Below, piece after piece: positions 2,193 to 54,532 of a stretch of DNA of 54,532 bases (position 1 is its first letter; each line of letters starts with the position of its first letter). The notes under the pieces were generated by a model, which was not told the DNA's origin, made no database searches, and saw nothing but the letters and a program-made list of their open reading frames with translations. Source of the DNA: Oopsacas minuta. Lineage: Eukaryota > Animalia > Porifera. Position numbers and translations under genes: made by a program. The DNA is taken from NCBI GenBank assembly GCA_024704765.1, contig JAKMXF010000042.1, positions 1-54,532 of the forward strand, in the 5' to 3' direction.

Positions 2193-3304
2193 CCTCAACC
2201 TAGTCCATACTGATTATACAGCATTCCAATGTCAATATGTGTTGTCATGTTACTTATCATGATTGTTTACTTGTTTACATATACTGTACACTTTGTTTAG
2301 CGCCAAAATTAGTTTATCAACAAACTTCTACAATTGTCCCGAATTTGCTAATTATAGATTACTACACAAATAGAAACTGATAGCTAATACAGCATAGCAA
2401 CTAATTCTTCAAAAGGAATGTGGCTAGTTATAACTGGGACTAATTTACATATTGAAAGCCATCTGGCCTAACACATCCGTAATTCTGTAAGACAATAGTC
2501 TCGTGGTAGAGTTCAAGGAAAAATGATTAGTTGTGGCTTTCTATTTCGCCACTTAACACCTGAATAATTAATGTATGAATTTGTATAAATACAGTCTGTA
2601 AATGAGAATAATCATAAACAGAACAACAAACAAATGGCCACCAAATACTCAGACGAAGTTCCTACCAACCATTTCGAACTAGTGGAACAGAAGATCCATT
2701 CCACCTTCGAGAAGATTATTAGGATTGCGACAGAAAGGAGAGATCAGCTGCTTGTCCAGCTGTTCGATTTCAAGCAGGACTATCTAATAAAGGAGAATAT
2801 ACCTATCCCAATCCATTCCTTCTATACTGAGGGTCTGGACTCTCTCCTAGAACAGCTGGAGAAGTTGGGTTCTATTCAGGAGATAGCTGAATCCTACAAA
2901 AACAAGACACAGCCAATCAGAAGGATAGGAAAACGTGGAAGTGAGAAAGGAGAGCTGTATAACCCTAGTGGATTAGCTCTAGATGGAGATAAGATCTATA
3001 TAGCAGATACAGAGAATAATAGGATACAGATCTTCTCTACAGAGGGTAAGTTCATTCATGAATTTGGTAAAGAGCAGCTAAATTATCCACGCGATATAGC
3101 ATTAAATAAGAAATGGGTGTTTATAAGTGATTGGAGACTTAATACTATATCTAAATTCTCTAAAACTAATTACCAATTAATTAAGAGTTTTAAGGAAGAT
3201 GTTGGTGCCCCTTGTGGTCTAACAACTGACACAAATGGAGAAGTGTTAGTTGCAGATTCTTATAATAATAGAATTGCAGTATTCAGCTCTGATTTAGAAT
3301 ATAT
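2193..3304 (+). repeat. Segmental duplicate of 53279-54532 (upstream region plus NHL gene)
   Basis: Both start cctcaacctagtccatactgattatacagcattcc and stay colinear through the ATG and the coding region to the window end, apart from a 141-bp indel. Confidence 0.95.
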
Positions 3305-3659
3305 TAGAGAAATAGGAAAAGACAAACTTAAATATCCGCAAGACGTCAAAATAAATAATAATAATATATTTGTAGTAGACAGAAATGAGATTAATAATAT
3401 ACACATATTCTCTAAATCAGGTGATTTATTGAAAAGTTTCATAAAATTAGAAGATGGAAGAGGAATTATTTATATGTGTTTTGATTTGTATAATAATATT
3501 ATAATTAGCGATGAGTTGGGAAGTTCAATTAATATATTTACTGAAGATGGACAGCTGATACACAAAATTAAATGTAATAGGCCTATAGGAATAATTGTTA
3601 ATAATAACTTTGATATTATTTGTGTTAGTTTTCGTGAAGATGTAATAAATATATATTAA
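2634..3659 (+). CDS. Coiled-coil + NHL-repeat beta-propeller protein (TRIM-NHL-like C-terminal half, no RING/B-box), 341 aa
   Basis: Intact single-exon ORF; NHL repeats such as LYNPSGLALDGDKIYIADTENNRIQIF and PCGLTTDTNGEVLVADSYNNRIAVF. Confidence 0.9.
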   Translation: MATKYSDEVPTNHFELVEQKIHSTFEKIIRIATERRDQLLVQLFDFKQDYLIKENIPIPIHSFYTEGLDSLLEQLEKLGSIQEIAESYKNKTQPIRRIGKRGSEKGELYNPSGLALDGDKIYIADTENNRIQIFSTEGKFIHEFGKEQLNYPRDIALNKKWVFISDWRLNTISKFSKTNYQLIKSFKEDVGAPCGLTTDTNGEVLVADSYNNRIAVFSSDLEYIREIGKDKLKYPQDVKINNNNIFVVDRNEINNIHIFSKSGDLLKSFIKLEDGRGIIYMCFDLYNNIIISDELGSSINIFTEDGQLIHKIKCNRPIGIIVNNNFDIICVSFREDVINIY

Positions 3660-8570: not shown

Positions 8571-9235
8571 GGGATATGGACAAATGACTACATGGATAAA
8601 TATTACAATTCCGGTACTTCGTGATATAGATACATGTTTTCTACTGATTTAAAGTGATGTGTATATATATATTCTACTAAATTTAATAATAAGTCAAAAT
8701 AACAAAAGACGAAGTAATGATGCATAAGTAAAGATAGAATATCATAGTAGTATATCCTATAACTCGTCCTAATTTGTTCCAAAAGTTAATCTGTGTGCAA
8801 TCCCTTGGAGGAATTTCATTTGGGATCGGTGAAAGTAATTAAGAACAAGGATTGGTTGAAGTAAAGCAGGCTAAATTTTTAGCCGGGGATAAGCCATCTA
8901 AAAGAACAAAGAATTCCGCTAATGAGGAGGGATTGACCAATCTTGTTCTTAATTACTTTCACCGATCCCAAATGAAATTCCTCCAAGGGATTGCACACAG
9001 ATTAACTTTTGGAACAAATTAGGACGAGTTATAGGATATACTACTATGATATTCTATCTTTACTTATGCATCATTACTTCGTCTTTTGTTATTTTGACTT
9101 ATTATTAAATTTAGTAGAATATATATATACACATCACTTTAAATCAGTAGAAAACATGTATCTATATCACAAAGTACCGGAATTGTAATATTTATCATGT
9201 AGTCATTTGTCCATGTAGTCATTTGTCCGTTTCCC
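8571..9235. mobile_element. Mutator-type foldback/MITE: ~290-bp near-perfect TIRs, ~79-bp spacer, 9-bp TSD
   Basis: Arm 8571-8856 is the reverse complement of arm 8936-9235 with only a few differences; gtattgata is duplicated at 8562-8570 and 9236-9244; termini GGGA...TCCC. Confidence 0.9.
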
Positions 9236-10559
9236 GTATTGATACAATAAATAAACTCTCATTTAGTAGTAATTCATCCTATTTAGTACCTTTTTATAGT
9301 TCCCAATAATAGATTAACTTCATATTGTCACATTTAGATTCTCATACTTGTGTATAATTGTTTTTACGTACGCTTATGTACTAATCCCGGATAAATTCCA
9401 TCCCGACAGAATCACTATTCATCATAAATTTATTATCCATGGTTGGTCATATAATAAAAAGTTGGGTGTTCATGCTCAGTAGAGTAGCGATAGAAGGAAT
9501 GTTGCATGATGTTGAATTTGAAATTTCTTTATCAGCTACTGTACTTTTCTGAAACTTTATTACGAATGTGAAGTTAGCAGCGCGCTGCAGCAGTAAGTTA
9601 TGAGCACGACTTAATGCATTATATCTCAGTCACCTCTTGGTTAATCGAGATGAAATCTCGTATGTAGCATTGTCTCGTGTGGGGCTTTTCTCATATTCAA
9701 TAATTAATCTCGATCGCACCTATTCTTCACACAATGGCGTTGCAAATTTTGTAATCTAAAATCCCCATATCGAATTTTGAGCCAACTAGCGCGACTTAAC
9801 CCTCAATAATTCTGTCAATTGTCAATCAATTCATCTGAAATTTGGTCAGTACCTTGTCTAGAGTGGTGCATTTCCCACATTCAATAGCTAATCCCTATCA
9901 CACCTACTCTTGTCACAATGACAACGCAAAATTTGTAGTACTAAATCCCCATATACTAGTCAGGGGTTGGCTGTTAGCCCTGAAACCGTGACAAGTCGGG
10001 TAAATGCACCAAATTTGGTACAAAGTTACAGTAGTGTACGCTTGTACCTTTATTGGGGAGCCAATTCTTCCAAGATCAGGAGTGTGATGCACAATCTGTT
10101 TTATGTGACACTGGACACATTTTGAAGGTATTTACATGCATTTATCTCATCCAGTTTGGATCGAAACGAATTTTATCTGGCAACAATCCATGCTCAAAAT
10201 TTGGCCTAAACATATCGAGTGACCCCTTGTTCGGCACCGCTAGGCTAGCTGAGTCTATTTATGCACATACAGACCCTTTAAATGATCTTAAGACAGTTAA
10301 CTAACTTCACAGAATATTGTTTATCCCCATGTAAACGAGTTTATCTCCAAGTATAAATCACAAGATGTAGATAAATACACTATTCAAGTTAATAATATTC
10401 TTGGAATTTTAGCATAAATATTTGGACCTGTTACCGAGATCTACAGTAGACCACAGGGACGTAGGTAGCAAAAAATTATTGGTGAGACATTCATCACATC
10501 TCACCATCTAGCTGTATTGACAGAATTGGGAAGCACCGCACCTCGTACCGGCTCCTACA

Positions 10560-10660
10560 GCACTGTACGATAAATGAATCAATTATAGTTTTCGTATTAT
10601 TAACAAAACATAGATATACACGGCACAATGTGCATCGGGGTTGAATTTTTGTGGAAATTT
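10560..10660 (-). mobile_element. Possible piggyBac C-terminal Cys-rich relic
   Basis: PRCTLCRVYLCFVNN resembles the CxxC-VYLCF end of piggyBac transposases; no other part of the element recognised. Confidence 0.3.
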
Positions 10661-11022
10661 TCATATTATTATCCATGGTCCCATCCAAATTCAATTTAAT
10701 GGCCTTTTGTGGTAATACTGCAGCTCTTACGTGGCTTTTGGTTAGAAATCTGGGCCATTTATGACTCAGTTATTTTGAAATTCTGAAATCTAATTTTTCG
10801 GATAATTTTTATGTTTTTCTACAGTCATGATGACGTAATAATTCTGGGATGAGTTTGCATTTGGCCAAAATCATGACATCAGATCATTTCTCACATTGAG
10901 GAGTGCCTGTGATTCAAATTTCACATCCCTATCATGTAAGTTGGCTGAGCAGTGGTTAATAATGTGGTATTCATTTTGTCATAGGTGTGTATTTTCGTCC
11001 AAAGCTCCATTTGGATACTAAT

Positions 11023-11142
11023 GGATACCTCAAGGCGCAATGCTCCAAGTTAATCGCGAACGACGAGCCAAAGGCTCGTAAATTATTAAATATCAATTGT
11101 TGTTTGTCCGTTGTCAAGGAAAGGATTTACGGTATGCAATTG
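11023..11142 (-). repeat. Helentron/HINE-like dispersed repeat, copy containing an end-to-start junction
   Basis: Hairpin acgagcc-aaa-ggctcgt directly adjacent to caattgttgtttgtccgttgtcaaggaaaggatttacggtatgcaa; shared with other copies. Confidence 0.6.
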
Positions 11143-11294
11143 TCAAATTGTCTCAATTAAGGTGAATATTTTTGCCCAAATTTTACGAAATTTTTTGTCA
11201 ATCTGCTTAGCTAAGTCACGGCTAAGTCAAAATTTTAACCGGTAGCACAGATTAAGCGAAATAGACTATTTATGAATTGCTAATACAATTAGAA

Positions 11295-13379
11295 ATGGCT
11301 ACAGCCCTAATTACTAATTTTCAAGAATGTTATATTGAAAAGGAAATAACCACAAAGCCAATGCTGGAGACAGCGAAGGAGAATTTTATCCCGCTACCTT
11401 TCTGTGAGTCACTCACAGCCATACATTCAAATATCAATAGGAAAGAATTGTCAGACATTCCAAACTGTCATAGCTTCATTCTGAATAACTTGCTAACTCA
11501 GAAAGAATGTGAATTTTTCATCCGAGAATGTGAAAAGGTTGGTTTTGGTAGTTTATCAAACAAATTCCCAACCTATTACAGAGTTAATGACAGAATCCTG
11601 ACTCTATCACATGAGATGGCAGATGCTATTTTCGCTAGAATCGAACCTCTCTTGACACGTCACGATGTAATACGTATCAGACCAATCGGATTTGGTAACG
11701 AGGGTACTTGGAGACCAATAAGATTGAATGAGTGTATTAAAATAATGAAATATACAAGTGGAGGACACTTCACACCTCATTTTGATGGACCATGGGTACC
11801 TCGTGAGGATGAATCATCAGTATACACAGTACTGATATACCTGAATACTGATTACACAGGTGGGGAAACCAAATTTATAGATGAGAAGGATAGGAAGCAT
11901 GTCTATCACAAGGTTAAACCGTGTGTTGGTATGGGTCTGATATTCAATCATGATACATTCCATGAGGGTACACCTGTATTGAAAGGTGTGAAATATCTTC
12001 TAAGAACTGAAATGATGTTTCGTCGAGTGGATACACAAATGATACCCAATCCGTTAAAGTACTCAGAATCTGAGTCCTACAACACAGCCCTGACTCTGTA
12101 TCGTAAGTCGAACCTGTTGGAGAAGGTTGGTGATCAGGAAGGATTCACAGACACATATTTACGAGCTATTAGATTGCAGATGGCAGCACAACGTAGTGTT
12201 AGTGATGAATACTACGGAGAATTGAAAAGATTAACACTCCCATACGAATTGTATATCAAAATATTCAGCTACTTGAGTGCTGAGGATGTTGTAATTTGTA
12301 TGGAAGTTTGTAAGGTTTGGTATGATCTTGCGATGGATGGAGGATTGTGGTTTGAATTGTATAAGAGAAGATGGTCACATGGTCATAAGGTGGATATCTA
12401 TCTTAGTGAAACTCTGATTAATCCACTCGTAATTGATTGGTATGGAAACTTCAAAGCTAGAATGACAATGCGATCTGCTGATAGATGTGCTGTTATCGAT
12501 ATGGGTAGTTATAACATTAGATGTGCTAATGTCCTCAATAAGAGTGGAGTGGTTCACACCAGTGAAATGCGCTCTGTAGTAGCTCGTGTATCTGGTATTT
12601 ATGATTTCCACATGAGGATGGTTAATCATGAGCGTTGGTTTTGTGGGGAATACGCATTGGCTAGCAATCCAAATGATTGTACACAAGTAGTTAAACGTGG
12701 TTTGATTGATGACATCACTCTGTTACCAGAAATATTATATGGATTATATATTGACTGTAAAATATATCCACGCACAACTTCAGTGCTTTGTCTTGTTAAT
12801 CCTCTATATTGTGCTTCCGTAGAATTGAAGATAAGTAATTTATTGCATGTTACTTATAAACACCCATGTATCCGTTGTACAGCACAAAGTGTAGCTGTAT
12901 GTGTTGGTAATAGAACTGCTAACGGTATTGTTGTTAACTACGGTTATGAGTCTGGTTGGATATCTTTAGTTAGTAATTGTAATTGTATTGCTTGTAAAGA
13001 GTTAGAGTTGAGTGTAGAGACAGAACATGTGTTTGCATTAATACAACAAATCGTTGAGACTGCTGCACTTACCAATGTTAATCTTTGTCTCTATTTCATT
13101 GGTGGTAACCTGAAAGATGATCTGATTCATAAATTGAAACAATCTTATAACGAAAGTAAAGATTGCATGAAATATATTCATAAAGTTGTCTATAATTCTA
13201 ATCCTAATGCAACTCTTTTAGCTGGAGTAGAGTATGCAAACTCTCTAAAGTGTAACAATCTGGGCATCTTTGATAAAAATATGTCCCAGTCTATAGATTT
13301 TCCCAGCGCTGCAAATTTTGACTTTCTTGTAGTGTATCAATATTTGCAAAAACTCTTAATCAATTTTGAACGTTTATGA
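11295..13379 (+). CDS. 2OG-Fe(II) prolyl-4-hydroxylase-like domain + F-box + divergent actin-fold fusion protein (694 aa from the ATG)
   Basis: Intact single-exon ORF. HFD...IYLN...GGET...HEG...KYLLRTE gives the HxD..H triad plus a basic 2OG-binding residue; F-box LPYELYIKIFSYLSAEDVVICMEVCKVWYDLAMDGGLW; actin-like AVIDMGSYNIR, FCGEYA, VKRGLID, NGIVVNYG, FIGGN. Confidence 0.85.
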   Translation: MATALITNFQECYIEKEITTKPMLETAKENFIPLPFCESLTAIHSNINRKELSDIPNCHSFILNNLLTQKECEFFIRECEKVGFGSLSNKFPTYYRVNDRILTLSHEMADAIFARIEPLLTRHDVIRIRPIGFGNEGTWRPIRLNECIKIMKYTSGGHFTPHFDGPWVPREDESSVYTVLIYLNTDYTGGETKFIDEKDRKHVYHKVKPCVGMGLIFNHDTFHEGTPVLKGVKYLLRTEMMFRRVDTQMIPNPLKYSESESYNTALTLYRKSNLLEKVGDQEGFTDTYLRAIRLQMAAQRSVSDEYYGELKRLTLPYELYIKIFSYLSAEDVVICMEVCKVWYDLAMDGGLWFELYKRRWSHGHKVDIYLSETLINPLVIDWYGNFKARMTMRSADRCAVIDMGSYNIRCANVLNKSGVVHTSEMRSVVARVSGIYDFHMRMVNHERWFCGEYALASNPNDCTQVVKRGLIDDITLLPEILYGLYIDCKIYPRTTSVLCLVNPLYCASVELKISNLLHVTYKHPCIRCTAQSVAVCVGNRTANGIVVNYGYESGWISLVSNCNCIACKELELSVETEHVFALIQQIVETAALTNVNLCLYFIGGNLKDDLIHKLKQSYNESKDCMKYIHKVVYNSNPNATLLAGVEYANSLKCNNLGIFDKNMSQSIDFPSAANFDFLVVYQYLQKLLINFERL

Positions 13380-13957
13380 CTTCTTCTCTAACGAACTTTG
13401 TATTCCAGCTTACCTTTGTAGATATAGCTAGATTATTTGTATTGATCCTTTGTTTTGAATTGATATTAGTTCATTCATTCCTTTACATTGGGTCCTCTCT
13501 AATAGTACACTTCTCTATCTCTATAAATCCTCCTCTTGTCAAAAGTACGAGTCCTATCTCCTATGTATACGATCATTTCGAATTTCTAATTGCTGTGGAC
13601 AATTAGAGAGGACTTTATGTATTATAGTTTTCCTCTCCACTTAAATGCATTTAAATAGAATACAGTATATTCTACTATGCTTCAAAAATTCATTTTCATT
13701 TTGTTACAATTGTATTATAATGTTTTTGTTGTTATTTTTCACAGAAAGGTGGCTAATTCATAGAATTAATTTTGAAAAAGTGGGAAATATTTTTCACACC
13801 TTGTGACTCTAGAATACTGTTAATTGTAGAAATTTGATATCTCTCTGTATAGGTATTTGTATTGATTTGTATTTATAATTAGAGCTCATTACTTACGTCA
13901 AATAGGAAAGTTATATTATTTGAATTGTTTCATTATTCTAGTTACAGAACTGAACTA

Positions 13958-14797
13958 ATGGCTACAGCTAATTCTTTAGAGAGCATATTCTCTGTAGACT
14001 ATAAGAGTAAGATACAACCTGTATTCAGTGTTTGTATAAGGGGAGAAAATCTCTGCGGACCTAAAGGAGTGACTATTGATAATACTACAGGAGATATCTG
14101 TATTGCAGATTGTTGGAATAATTGTGTGAAAGTATTCGATTGTAATGGTCAGATTATGTTTAAATTTGGAGATGAGGATGGAGAAGGAAAGATGTATCGT
14201 CCAGATGGGTTAGCTATATGTAGAGATAGACTTCTTATTTCACAAAGAAACAAGAGTATTTTGAATTATCAAGTGAATGGAGAGTTAGTTTCTATAATAG
14301 GGAAACCTGGGAAAGGAGATTTGGAATTTGATTATCCTCGTGGTCTGACATTTGATGAATCTAACGGTGAGTTATACATATGTGATTCTAATAATCATCG
14401 TATTCAGATACTGTCCAAGGAACTTAGCTACAAGACACAGTTTGGACAAGATAACCTCAAATCTCCTCTTGATGTATAACTTACAAAAGAATTTATTTAT
14501 ATTCTAGATCAATCTAATTTTTGTTTTCATCTGTACGACTACAATCTTATCCTACATAAGAGTGTTATTTCTAGAGGATATAAATTACAGGTGTTTGTTC
14601 CATATTTCTTCTATATTGACAATTCTAACAATATTGTTTTCACAGATTTCTCTTTTAACTCTATTTCTATTTTCAACTCTCAATTTGATTTGATACACAA
14701 GATTTTGCTAACTAATCCTCTCGGTATTACAGTAGATAACAGAGGAAGAGTTATTGTAGTTTGTAATGAAGGTGAACATCATCTTAATATTTTTTGA
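13958..14797 (+). pseudogene. NHL-repeat gene with one premature in-frame stop
   Basis: MATANS...; TAA at 14477-14479 in DV*L where the paralogue at 17491 reads DVKL; frame continues to HLNIF*. Confidence 0.85.
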
Positions 14798-14989
14798 TAA
14801 TTTTTCTAATTTACTAATATTCATATCTTTGTTTACTTTTCCTTTTGAATAACTATTTTGTTACTTCTGAATCAACTATACTCACCCATATTATATATTA
14901 TATATTATTCCTTGTTGTTATTTCACATCTTAAAGAGGTTGCCTTTATGCTATAACTACGCCATAAGCCCGCACTCTCCTTCTATTCTA

Positions 14990-16300
14990 CAGGGTGACAA
15001 ATAAGTTCTGTCCCATATGTTTGATGAAGTGTAGTTTCTTATTAAAGAACCAGATTGAATGGTTATAGTGTAAGATAAGTAACAATGTATATATTTAAAG
15101 TATTCAAAGGTAATTCGTACACTCTGAACAAGCTAAAGATTCTAGGCAAAATGGAGAAGAATAGGGTGGCTATTGTTAATTTATATTTGCAAGGGAAAAG
15201 CCAAAGCGAAATATTGAAGATTCTCAATTTCCCCAAGTCACGCAGGAAATTGAAATATCGTACTATTAACAGATATAAGGACACTGGTAGTACCTCAGAC
15301 AGGCAGATAAGTGGACGTCCAACATCTGCGACCACTACCCAGAAGAGAAAGGTTATCGGTAGTCGGATTCAGCGAAATCTGCAACGTTCGATTCGAAAAA
15401 TGGCGCTAAAACTCAAAATACCAAGAGAATCGGTCCGAACAATTGTGAAGAGCGATATGGGCCTATTTCCTTACAAAAAGAAGAAGGTTCACTTTATTCC
15501 GGCACAGATTAAAGAAAAGAGACTAGCCAGGAGCAAGGCCTTACTCGCCCGGTTCGCAAGTTTTGGCCTTGATGAAATTTATTCTCGGATGAGAAATTAT
15601 TCACGGTTGAGCAGGCGTACAATCGTCAAAACGATCGAGTATTGTCCTCTTCTCCATCTTCCATACCACAAGAGTATCGATGCGTCCAAAGAGTTCAGCA
15701 TCCTCACTCAGTGATGGTTTGGGAGGGGGTGTCCGCAAAAGGCCGTACCCCACTGGTTTTCATCCCACCGAGTGTAAAAATAAACGCTGTTAAGTATCAG
15801 GACCTCGTTTTAGACCCAATAGTGAGAGGCCTTAGTAAGACCATGTTCAATAATTGTCCATTTTTATTCCCAGCAAGACGGTGCGCCAGCCCACACAGCG
15901 AAAGTCAACCAACCGTGCTTACGAAACAATATCCCAGACTTCATCTCCAAGGAGGAATGGCCTCCTTCCAGCCCAGATCTCAACCCGATGGACTTCTCGT
16001 TGTGGTCGATATTGGAGACAAATGCGTGCTCTACTTCCCACAAGAGTATCAAGTCTCTAAAAACGTATTTATCCCAAGAATGGGCAAAAATCTCGCAGGA
16101 AAAGTTGCGTGCCGCTGTCGAGTCCGTCCCCAAGCGGCTAAGAGCTGTCATCAAAAAAGAAAGGGGGCTATATCGAGCAATTGAATATTTATGAATCTAT
16201 ATTTAGTTTGCTAAGTTATAGCATAATTTCAAGTCATTATCTTAGTTCATGGTTTAGTTATAATAAATTTTCAATGTGACAGAACTTATTTGTCACCCTG
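14990..16300 (+). mobile_element. Tc1/mariner maT-type (DD37D) transposon, full length (1311 bp), transposase frameshifted
   Basis: TIR cagggtgacaaataagttctgtc at both ends, TA TSD; transposase starts at 15151 (MEKNRVAIV); FSDEK, QQDGAPAH, WPPSSPDLNPMD with 37 residues between the second and third D; two frameshifts. Confidence 0.92.
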
Positions 16301-17275
16301 TAAGTATTCGAGAAGAATTGAATTTTGGAAACAAATCATAGAAAACTCAACTCGCAACAACTTTAATCACAAAATGGATGGACAAAAAGGAAACAGTGAG
16401 GAAATTACTTGGATGACGCTGAACAAGCTGGATTAGATAAACTAAGAAGAGTACTTGATTGTAATAAAGGAGAGAAAAGAGAATTTGTCCTGAAGAAGGC
16501 AATTAAGGAGATAAAGCTACTATCCCAACAGAATAATTAATGAAATAAAGAAAGAACTGAAGCACCGAGCATATTTTGAGATTTACAATGTCTTATACTG
16601 AAATAGAAATTTGGTACTATTTTTAGTATACTTGTACTGTTCTGAGATTTTCTAAAATACTAACTTGGCAGCACTGTCTCTATCTCAATAAGGATCTTGA
16701 TTGTATTGAATTTATAGAAATTACATTTGTTCATTATTGTAGCCTGGGGATGAAAGGTTCACGAACTAACTGGAACAGTGCAATTTCTTTAATCTTAGCC
16801 TGAGGTCTGTTTAGTTCGTTTACATTCACATCTTAACCTCAACTCCAATAATTTGTCTCGTTCAGTGAGTTGAAGGGTTGTATCGATCGTTTATTCATTT
16901 CCCTATTACTGCACACATCTGTAATATTCTTGGTCATAAATTTTAAACTTATCATAACAGAATATGTACAATAGAATAAAGTAGTATCACATTACTATAC
17001 CGTCTATACTTATATCAGTAATGTATAACTCTATGTTATTCTGATTTATATATTCCTATTATTATTATTCTATTTTATTCTACAAAGATATTTCTAAATA
17101 TTTATTGTCTTAATTCAAGATAAAGGTGAGTAGTTTCATTAGTTAATTGTTGTTGTTCAATTTTACAGGTTCTTGTAGCCACACTAATCCCCTGGAATAC
17201 GCTGTCACACCATAATCTAAGCCATTGGTTCCGTACATCTTTCACCTGTGTTCCCCTATGCCACTTTTAATTCAT

Positions 17276-17490: not shown

Positions 17491-18361
17491 ATGGCCACAT
17501 CTAATCCTATTGAATTAGAACCTGTTGAAGATAATTTAGAGAGAGTGGGAACTGAAATTGATTACAAAAGCAAGATACAACCTCTAGTGAGTATTTGTAA
17601 GAGAGAAAATGGAAATGATGAACTTGTGTGGCCACATTGTGTTACAGTAGATGACAAAACTGGAGATATTTATGTAGCGGATTGTTTTAATAACTGTGTT
17701 AAAGTATTTGACAGTGCTGCTAAGTATATATATATTCAAATTTGGTGACAGTATAGGTGAAGAAAATATGTGCCATCCACGAAGTTTAGTTGTTTATAGG
17801 AGTAGGATTCTAATTACTCATGAACACGGTATATTGAGTTATAACCTTGATGGTGAATATATTTCTAGAATTGGTAAATATGGAAAAGGAGAGTTAGAAT
17901 TCAACTATCCTAGCTGTATAGCAATCAATGAATTTAATGATGATATTTACATTTGTGATTATTATAACAATCGAGTTCAAATACTCTCAAAAGATTTCCA
18001 ATTCAAATCACAATTTGGTTCATTCACATTACCTATTGATGTTAAACTCTCTAAAGATTATATTTATGTGTTAGATGACTCTAATCCTTGCGTCCATCTA
18101 TTCAATCATAACCACATACTACAGAAGAGTGTAATTTCACGAGGAGAAGGAAATCAAGTCATATATCCCGACTCATTCTTTCTTGACAATTCTAACAACA
18201 TTCTAATTCCTGATTATTTTTCTATTTCTATCTTCAACCCAGAATTCCAATCAATTCATAATATTCCAGTCTCTAAGCATCCAACTTCAGTAACAGTAGG
18301 CAATCATGATAGTGTTATAGTAGTGTGTTATGATGCTGTGAACTGTCTACAGATATTTTGA
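17491..18361 (+). pseudogene. NHL-repeat gene with a frameshift in a (TA)n run
   Basis: MATSNP...DYKSKIQP; frame switches at aagtatatatatattc (~17722-17737); downstream frame has FNYPSCIAINEFNDDIYICDYYNNRVQIL and ends CLQIF*. Confidence 0.85.
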
Positions 18362-53720: not shown

Positions 53721-54532
53721 ATGGCCACCAAATACTCAGATGAAATTCCTACCAAGCATTTCGAACTAGAGGAACAGAAGATCCATTCCACCTTCGAGAA
53801 GATTATTAGGATTGCGACAGAAAGGAGAGATCAGCTGCTTGTCCAGCTGTTCGATATGAAGCAGGATTATCTAAGAAAGGAGGATACACGACAAAAACAA
53901 TTAGCAGACCTGGAGAAGATGATCAGACAATTAATGGAAACTAGCATTCAACAGAATGAAGTAGTAAAGCTGCAAGAAGATCAAATAAAGAATTTGAAAA
54001 ATGAACAAAAGAAATACGAAATAGAAACACCAATTCCAATCCCCTCCTTCTATATTGAGGGTCTAGACTCTCTCCTAGAACAGCTGGAGAAGTTGGGTTC
54101 TATTCAGGAGATAGCTGAACCCTACAAAAACAAGGCACAGCCTATCAGAAGGATAGGAAAACTTGGAAGGGAGAAAGGAGAGCTGAATGACCCTCGTGGA
54201 CTAGCTCTAGATGGAGATAAGATCTATATAGCAGATAAAGGCAATAATAGAATACAGATCTTCTCTACAGAAGGTAACTTCATTCATGAATTTGGTAAAG
54301 AGCAGCTAAAGAGTCCATTCGGTATAGCATTATACAAGGAATGGGGGTTTGTAAGTGATTGGCATAGTAATACTATTTTTAAATTCTCCAAAACAAATTA
54401 CAAATTAATTAAGAGTGTTAAGGAAGTTCTTAGTTTCCCTCTTGGTCTAACAACTGACACAAATGGAGAAGTGTTAGTTGCAGATTCTTGGAATAATAGA
54501 ATTGCAGTATTCAGCTCTGATTTAGAATATAT
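53721..54532 (+). CDS. Coiled-coil + NHL-repeat protein, paralogue of 2634-3659, running off the window end
   Basis: ATG at 53721, MATKYSDEIPTKHFELEEQK...; open to the window end; contains 47 extra coiled-coil residues. Confidence 0.9.
   Translation, partial: MATKYSDEIPTKHFELEEQKIHSTFEKIIRIATERRDQLLVQLFDMKQDYLRKEDTRQKQLADLEKMIRQLMETSIQQNEVVKLQEDQIKNLKNEQKKYEIETPIPIPSFYIEGLDSLLEQLEKLGSIQEIAEPYKNKAQPIRRIGKLGREKGELNDPRGLALDGDKIYIADKGNNRIQIFSTEGNFIHEFGKEQLKSPFGIALYKEWGFVSDWHSNTIFKFSKTNYKLIKSVKEVLSFPLGLTTDTNGEVLVADSWNNRIAVFSSDLEY

Follow-up and report, generated by a model that had tools for sequence, protein, structure and literature searches.

F-box proteins that carry either an actin fold or a dioxygenase within the same chain have been described separately, and a third body of work concerns hydroxylases that act in concert with ubiquitin ligases. 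ARP8/SUSA2 (At5g56180) places an F-box ahead of an actin fold; SUSA2 binds the Skp1 homologue ASK1, acts genetically as a component of a Skp1–cullin–F-box (SCF) ubiquitin ligase, and keeps its function when the predicted nucleotide-binding residues are mutated, and this F-box–actin combination has been called plant-only (PMC7562919). A non-haem Fe/2-oxoglutarate (2OG) dioxygenase is joined to an F-box in KDM2A/KDM2B (FBXL11/FBXL10) and in Dictyostelium JcdI (Fbxo13), which binds Skp1 via its F-box, shows a Km for O2 of about 22% and an activity limited by physiological O2, and was presented as the first F-box protein found to be conserved among protists (PMC9485057). Finally, PhyA and the PHD-VHL-HIF pathway share the theme of O2-dependent prolyl hydroxylation tied to a cullin-RING ligase. 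Here, we describe a gene of the hexactinellid sponge Oopsacas minuta, located on contig JAKMXF010000042.1 (54,532 nucleotides, the whole of which is referred to as the window), whose product combines a prolyl 4-hydroxylase (P4H)-type oxygenase, an F-box and an actin-like domain. In Holozoa, this gene represents a family of F-box proteins that is ancient, spans the eukaryotes and has yet to be characterised.

The open reading frame (ORF) listing of the window contains a single uninterrupted plus-strand frame that opens with a TTG at 11277, or with an ATG at 11295, and runs to 13379. Counted from the ATG, which is the start also used by the closest homologue, the O. minuta protein P0001, the frame comprises 694 codons, and the two proteins share 90% identity across 100% of the length. 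The homologues at loci L001 (O. minuta) and L002 (another hexactinellid) are likewise single uninterrupted genes, and this single-exon state, found at all three loci, is unremarkable in a genome that averages 1.59 introns per gene (PMC10280926). Pfam returned three domains in the window protein, in the order 2OG-FeII_Oxy_3, F-box-like and Actin, the last of them under its cut-off. An earlier note on this DNA, made from its letters alone, had read the 694-codon ORF as a fusion of three modules, namely a P4H-like domain with intact metal ligands, a short helical hairpin followed by an F-box, and an actin fold, and each of these assignments was borne out by one or more of the ORF listing, Pfam, the family profiles, the structural model and the fold matches. 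Its residue numbers began at the TTG, six codons upstream; accordingly, the iron ligands it gave as H168/D170/H229 are H162/D164/H223 in the ATG count used here, its F-box at about 320-366 and actin fold from about 403 correspond to 314-360 and 397, and the KYLLR it reported is present as K233-R237. The gene and its architecture are almost certainly real and conserved.

The sequence and the structural model agree in placing the oxygenase with the collagen/plant/bacterial/viral P4H type and not with the HIF-PHD/PhyA type. PF13640 (2OG-FeII_Oxy_3) matched residues 149-235 (E 1.6e-11, 45.4 bits, cut-off 27), and a search of the PDB with the N-terminal family profile retrieved the P4Hs of B. anthracis (1.3e-13), Chlamydomonas (Cr-P4H, 8.7e-9) and virus PBCV-1 (3.2e-7) as well as P4H-TM (3e-6). 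The model of residues 21-300, which spans the oxygenase and the hairpin and was built with a 20-sequence alignment, reached a predicted local distance difference test score (pLDDT) of 92.2 and a predicted template modelling score (pTM) of 0.91. When this model was compared with known folds by Foldseek, Cr-P4H-1 was the best match (E 5.4e-10), the viral collagen P4H of PBCV-1 (vCPH) aligned with a template modelling score of 0.69, and human P4H-TM, B. anthracis P4H and C-P4H-II were further top matches; for residues 2-241, the top Swiss-Prot model match was Arabidopsis P4H13. No chain of PHD2 or PhyA occurred among the 14 PDB profile matches at E<=0.01 or within the top 50 Foldseek matches, where the only PHD-like entry was a bacterial PPHD at rank 39. 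Pfam found no JmjC domain in the window protein, the profile and fold matches being P4H-type.

Motif and spacing counts were made on 165 retrieved proteins, 120 of which carry both oxygenase and F-box. Throughout these 120 relatives, the iron-binding triad is invariant and the accompanying Lys nearly so (Table 1), and the oxygenase has a full set of catalytic residues, with the HxD...H triad and the Lys at position +10 after the distal His, which in P4H-type enzymes binds the C5 carboxylate of 2OG. The described P4Hs (Cr-P4H-1, P4H13, B. anthracis P4H, vCPH and P4H-TM) share this fold, triad and Lys with the window domain. They differ from it in sequence (15-21% identity), in the fusion of the window domain to an F-box, and in one position, where the Tyr found in B. 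anthracis P4H three residues ahead of the first iron-binding His is replaced by Phe in 118/120 family members.

The region between the oxygenase and the F-box is formed by the hairpin, for which helices lie at 233-237, 240-257 and 261-279 of the domain model, with a pLDDT of about 95. Across the family, the oxygenase ends at a nearly fixed distance ahead of the F-box (median 62 residues, interquartile range 59-65), whereas the distance between F-box and actin-like domain is looser, ranging from 24 to 119 residues. By its sequence, the F-box is canonical: F-box-like (PF12937) matched residues 314-357 (E 1.7e-13, 50.6 bits, cut-off 24.3), F-box (PF00646) was also recovered (E 1.1e-7, 31.9 bits, cut-off 20.5), the best PDB sequence matches were the F-boxes of KDM2B, FBXL5, FBXW8, KDM2A and SKP2, and nearly all relatives match 49/49 positions of the F-box profile. 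In the linker that follows, D381 and W382 are invariant in alignment A1, and W382 is Trp in 99/120 relatives.

The actin-like character of the C-terminal domain is less evident from the single protein than from the family. For the window protein alone, Pfam Actin matched residues 399-589 with E 1.7e-4 and 20.7 bits, below the cut-off of 27, whereas a profile of 21 C-terminal domain sequences (A2) retrieved actin from the PDB at E 2.9e-19, and a Foldseek search with the AlphaFold model returned actin and Arp2 at E ~1e-10 and probability 1.00 over residues 397-653. The earlier note had held that its proposal would fall if this region failed to model as an actin fold; both lines of evidence recover that fold. 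Identity to actin amounts to just 11-14%, and the profile alignment has a gap opposite actin residues ~188-272, from which it follows that most of subdomain 4 is absent. Of the nucleotide motifs, the window protein retains the phosphate-1 loop (D-x-G-S-x-x-x-R) and the adenosine motif GG, while its phosphate-2 loop is degenerate (N-Y-G-Y-E-S-G vs D-S-G-D-G-V-T in actin). This subfamily has lost subdomain 4, and its phosphate-2 loop lacks the acidic residues needed for catalysis. Hence, the C-terminal domain does not combine four subdomains with intact nucleotide motifs, and is actin-like in fold without being a conventional actin or Arp. The domain is a scaffold of the actin-like kind, for which a role as ATPase or filament subunit is unlikely. 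The tail beyond it shows a dN/dS (ratio of nonsynonymous to synonymous substitution rates) of about 1.5 against the O. minuta copy. In the tail, a dense substitution cluster plus one 3-nt indel distinguish window positions 13300-13360 (residues ~670-690) from that copy, and a YW motif retained by sponge, choanoflagellate and amoebozoan relatives is gone from the window protein. A compensated frameshift was ruled out, the difference consisting of those substitutions and the single indel.

The three-domain architecture extends far beyond this locus. Full-length homologues that share the Pfam domains of the window protein were recovered by a word-indexed search from O. minuta (90% identity), another hexactinellid assembly (at least five copies at 64-68%), Halichondria panicea (46%) and Ephydatia muelleri (42%). 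An exhaustive hidden Markov model search, in which the family alignment was run against 1.84 billion cluster representatives, gave 12,268 matches at E<=0.001, of which 910 reached E<=1e-30. Among the 120 proteins with oxygenase and F-box, an alignable actin-like domain was found in 69, and in a further 32 the F-box is followed by at least 250 residues that the profile left unaligned; when ten of these unaligned parts were scanned, two matched Pfam Actin, P0085 with 27.7 bits (above the cut-off) and P0050 with 26.4 (just under it). Dictyostelid members pass the Pfam Actin cut-off as such (P0058, 48.9 bits; P0070, 30 bits). Apart from sponges, named members come from choanoflagellates (Choanoeca flexa, Salpingoeca infusionum), amoebozoans (Stenamoeba, Pellita, Pyxidicula, Arcella, Copromyxa, Physarum, Tieghemostelium, Dictyostelium purpureum), Heterolobosea (Willaertia and three Naegleria lovaniensis paralogues), the chytrid Nowakowskiella and the foraminiferan Bolivina. 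Among the named matches sampled, no animal member outside sponges was seen. The top AlphaFold DB cluster was that of L8HCR0, an Acanthamoeba-type 'Actin subfamily protein' (residues 42-585, E 2.5e-36), and the clusters A0A820S6H8, A0A819ZFG3 and A0A814IJR4, which also ranked high, cover the oxygenase and, in part, the F-box. Some members carry extra modules: a FYVE zinc finger occurs in P0011 and P0023 (Pellita catalonica), and in P0070 (D. purpureum, 2127 residues) the actin-like domain is followed by a lipase-like segment, a STAND-type nucleoside triphosphatase and TPR repeats. All members bear names assigned automatically, such as hypothetical, F-box domain-containing or Fe2OG dioxygenase domain-containing. 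The uniqueness that the earlier note implied is contradicted by these results, which place the same architecture in hundreds of clusters (50% identity) from many eukaryotic groups. Of its companion proviso, that the proposal would fall were the architecture already widespread and characterised, the first half applies and the second does not, as a literature search that was thin on subscription journals found no paper describing a P4H-type enzyme with an F-box and an actin fold.

A maximum-likelihood tree built on the oxygenase-to-F-box region grouped the sponge sequences (85/85) inside a starred clade (100/98) with two choanoflagellates, while Amoebozoa and Heterolobosea are scattered across several old subfamilies. 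This grouping fits vertical descent in Holozoa rather than recent transfer. A weak Pfam match to Pox_C4_C10 (22 bits, under the cut-off of 25) and a Nucleocytoviricota P4H cluster among the neighbours in an atlas of language-model features were also recorded. A viral or horizontal origin was rejected, the sponge sequences grouping together and with choanoflagellates and Pox_C4_C10 being merely another 2OG oxygenase model. This locus and L001 are syntenic and both are flanked by NHL-repeat genes, with a nucleotide identity of about 94% across the gene region. The other hexactinellid assembly (ENA ERZ25766962, in which L002 is contig ctg17165) encodes five or more full-length paralogues as well as fragments (P0002-P0006, P0010 and P0018), of which P0005 and P0006 probably come from the same contig of 2,404,485 bases, and the number of family members seems to be growing in glass sponges. 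No paralogue was found elsewhere within the window.

Comparison of coding sequences points to uneven constraint along the chain. Against L002, for which dS is saturated at about 1.7, dN/dS for the whole gene was 0.14, with domain values of 0.058 (oxygenase), 0.10 (F-box) and 0.215 (actin-like domain); in the comparison with the O. minuta copy L001 (dS 0.08) the corresponding values were 0.575, 0.13, 0.21 and 0.58. These ratios place the oxygenase and the F-box under strong purifying selection, with an actin-like domain that evolves faster. In F-box receptor families, the docking motif is usually conserved while the C-terminal domain evolves faster and diversifies. Conservation of the enzyme and the F-box, a faster C-terminal domain and at least five paralogues in one assembly are what one would expect of an F-box family whose C-terminal domain recognises substrates.

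As regards transcription, EukProt TRINITY records supply family members from other organisms, and the family is expressed elsewhere since its members occur in these transcriptome assemblies. For the window copy, the ORF is present in five public runs whose kind is not on record, and short contigs from four of them match it at about 98-99% in the case of organism A and about 96% in that of organism B. Run X2 is the only one in which the summed word depth over the ORF (about 650-2300) exceeds that of the unique flanks (47-177) by 10-40 times, whereas the depth profile of run X4 is flat. One contig each in X2 and X4 joins the ends of window positions 12245-12823, with 32 other letters replacing 577 bases and no GT..AG ends. 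The source could be a divergent copy, allelic or paralogous, or else contig chimerism; a spliced form is not suggested.

With these features in hand, the relation of the window protein to the systems introduced above can be specified. KDM2A/B and Dictyostelium JcdI are closer precedents for an oxygenase with an F-box than those named in the earlier note, from which they were absent; their oxygenases, however, are JmjC-type as opposed to P4H-type, and none of them has an actin fold. The partner domains in KDM2 are LRR, CXXC and PHD, and JcdI places its F-box ahead of JmjC, whereas here the oxygenase stands ahead of the F-box. The JmjC–F-box proteins resemble the window protein in logic only. 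ARP8 shares the order F-box then actin fold, and rice ARP8 aligns structurally to residues 299-585 of the window protein, F-box included; unlike the window protein it is oxygenase-free, with an actin domain that makes up about 70% of the chain (PMC7562919). Streptophyta F-box–actin clusters were the nearest in language-model features (score 0.67), which serves as a lead only, and word-indexed searches with the single domain and with a 21-sequence alignment (A5) returned family members only and no ARP8 sequence. The window family shows the F-box–actin combination outside plants. PhyA and PHD2 form a separate P4H subfamily, and in their pathways enzyme and ligase receptor are separate proteins; the analogy with PhyA drawn in the earlier note holds for the shared theme of hydroxylation and ligase and is weak for the oxygenase itself. 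Keywords found no family member in the Dictyostelium Skp1-interactome paper and its supplement, where a search by name had no D. discoideum gene identifier to go by. Together, each pair of modules is already known, and the triple of P4H, F-box and actin fold was not found described in the literature search.

The best overall explanation, to which we assign a probability of roughly 0.5, is that the window carries an intact, selected member of this family, encoding a Skp1-docking F-box receptor with its own hydroxylase. The mechanism as such is a tentative proposal that we rate somewhat short of even odds. Through its F-box the protein would dock on Skp1, whether within an SCF ubiquitin ligase or as a heterodimer with Skp1; Skp1 binding is here a prediction from the F-box motif. 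The fast-evolving actin-like domain would serve as a partner- or substrate-binding surface, being neither ATPase nor filament former, and the oxygenase would hydroxylate a residue (most likely a proline) of either the bound partner or a neighbouring complex subunit, which would make the output dependent on O2, 2OG and Fe. The candidate substrate residue could be Pro, Lys or something else. The precedents of SUSA2/ARP8 and JcdI make a receptor with an associated hydroxylase plausible.

Several observations weigh against this explanation. The full-length AlphaFold model (pLDDT 74, pTM 0.54) does not fix the mutual arrangement of the three domains. The dN/dS of the actin-like domain against the closest copy could alternatively reflect relaxed constraint in the window copy. 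Substrate chemistry may differ from that of classical P4Hs because of the Tyr-to-Phe replacement. None of the runs listed has 'RNA' in its library description, and run depth argues weakly for transcription of the window copy. Moreover, an F-box on an oxygenase need not mark a ubiquitin-ligase receptor, since JcdI affects O2 sensitivity independently of its F-box.

This last point leads to the alternative that survives best, although we consider it rather unlikely, in which the protein is mainly a protein hydroxylase, the F-box is a Skp1 handle for stability, solubility or regulation (a role already proposed in the case of JcdI), the actin-like domain provides targeting, and no substrate is ubiquitylated. 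The oxygenase is the best-conserved part of the chain (dN/dS 0.058-0.13, triad in 120/120), the fixed hairpin spacing suggests that enzyme and Skp1 form one rigid unit, and KDM2B-SKP1 in non-SCF complexes offers a parallel. JcdI, in turn, was soluble only when co-expressed with Skp1, and its O2 effect needed dioxygenase activity and not the F-box (PMC9485057). A mere handle sits less well with an F-box that is fully canonical and conserved like the enzyme (dN/dS 0.10-0.21), or with the plant F-box–actin protein SUSA2, which acts genetically as an SCF component.

A more ambitious version of the receptor explanation, which we regard as doubtful and which proceeds by analogy, would see hydroxylation-gated degradation as in PHD-VHL-HIF compressed into one chain. 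An SCF receptor with its own P4H would then have been an O2/2OG sensor of early eukaryotes, with ARP8/SUSA2 as an oxygenase-less derivative. Either a partner bound to the actin-like domain or a subunit of the SCF would be hydroxylated and then ubiquitylated or spared according to O2 and 2OG, and this sensor would have been retained in sponges and choanoflagellates.

There is a slender chance that the actin-like domain acts as a cap or decoy in actin/Arp assemblies, with the hydroxylase or SCF activity directed at actin or actin-binding proteins. Conventional actins and Arp2 match it best, ahead of other ASKHA-fold proteins, and the automatic name of L8HCR0 points the same way; low identity to actin, a missing subdomain 4, degenerate nucleotide loops and fast evolution are nevertheless not what a subunit of a conserved actin lattice would be expected to show. 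Slightly more slender still is the possibility of a Skp1- or Cul1-directed hydroxylase, a functional analogue of PhyA in which the F-box parks the P4H on Skp1. The oxygenase does lie directly N-terminal to the F-box at a fixed distance, and PhyA proves that prolyl hydroxylation of Skp1 exists in protists. Yet no PHD2 or PhyA chain appeared in the profile and fold matches reported above, a stoichiometric and tightly bound enzyme is poorly suited to modifying a shared adaptor, the conserved C-terminal domain would be left without a role, and dictyostelids have family members while D. discoideum has PhyA as well (PMC9485057).

Lastly, a non-functional copy, or a chance or assembly-made fusion peculiar to the window genome, is very improbable: damaged adjacent genes, the lost YW motif and the weak transcription evidence speak for it, but the 694-codon frame is open, the three-domain order recurs across independent genomes and transcriptomes, all three domains show purifying selection against the distant copy, and independent public-run contigs match the window through the ORF, its 3' end included. 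A pseudogene was held unlikely given the open frame and dN/dS, and the outcome of the exhaustive search, together with the range of taxa sampled, led us to reject a unique or accidental fusion.

Table 1. Features of the three-domain gene in window coordinates, with residues counted from the ATG.
Feature	Position	Strand	Basis
Whole coding sequence	11295..13379	+	694 codons plus stop, intron-free
P4H-type 2OG/Fe(II) oxygenase domain, double-stranded beta-helix, residues 30-250	11382..12044	+	Pfam, profile, fold
HxD iron ligands H162, D164	11778..11786	+	120/120 oxygenase + F-box relatives; invariant in alignments A1 and A3
Distal iron ligand H223, plus K233 at +10	11961..11993	+	H223 120/120, K233 119/120; aligned to B. 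anthracis P4H motif
Two-helix hairpin, residues 255-297, packing on the oxygenase and leading into the F-box	12057..12185	+	Model of residues 21-300
F-box, residues 312-360	12228..12374	+	Pfam, PDB sequence matches
Post-F-box linker with conserved D381-W382 (DWYG) motif	12375..12476	+	Invariant in A1
Reduced actin-fold domain, residues 395-655	12477..13259	+	Profile A2 vs PDB, Foldseek, motif table
Fast-evolving C-terminal tail, residues 656-694	13260..13376	+	Model confidence low, pLDDT <50

The surroundings of the gene are partly degraded. Downstream, an NHL-repeat homologue at 13958-14794 shows 77% identity over all 282 residues of an O. minuta NHL protein in one frame, while the ORF that contains its start (13925-14479) ends at 14479, short of the 282-residue protein; because of this stop, the copy is truncated or decayed. 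More NHL homologues lie at about 17491-18358, 2856-3629 and 54084-54530, making this an NHL-gene-rich region, as in the O. minuta contig L001. At 15085-16184, two overlapping plus-strand ORFs (15085-15714 and 15642-16184) read like the frameshift-split halves of a putative Tc1/mariner-type transposase, as judged by eye. The description of the neighbours as decayed is therefore only partly true, applying to the NHL ORF cut at 14479 and to the split transposase-like frame. Just upstream of the gene, at 10946-11152, summed contig depth rises to about 175,000 in run X1 as compared with hundreds nearby, and contig ends and alternative junctions pile up at 11100, 11141 and 11152. This segment is probably a high-copy repeat element, and an Rfam scan of window positions 9000-16500 gave no match there or elsewhere in that interval.

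The significance of these observations lies with the family and not with a peculiarity of the window. The family merges two themes, oxygenase–F-box and F-box–actin, each of which has so far been treated as a special case, and it bears on two published claims, that the F-box–actin combination is plant-only (PMC7562919) and that JcdI is the first protist-wide F-box protein (PMC9485057). Dictyostelids, Physarum, Naegleria and choanoflagellates are tractable carriers in which its members can be approached. The family would offer a second, unstudied candidate link between the availability of O2 and 2OG and the Skp1/SCF system.

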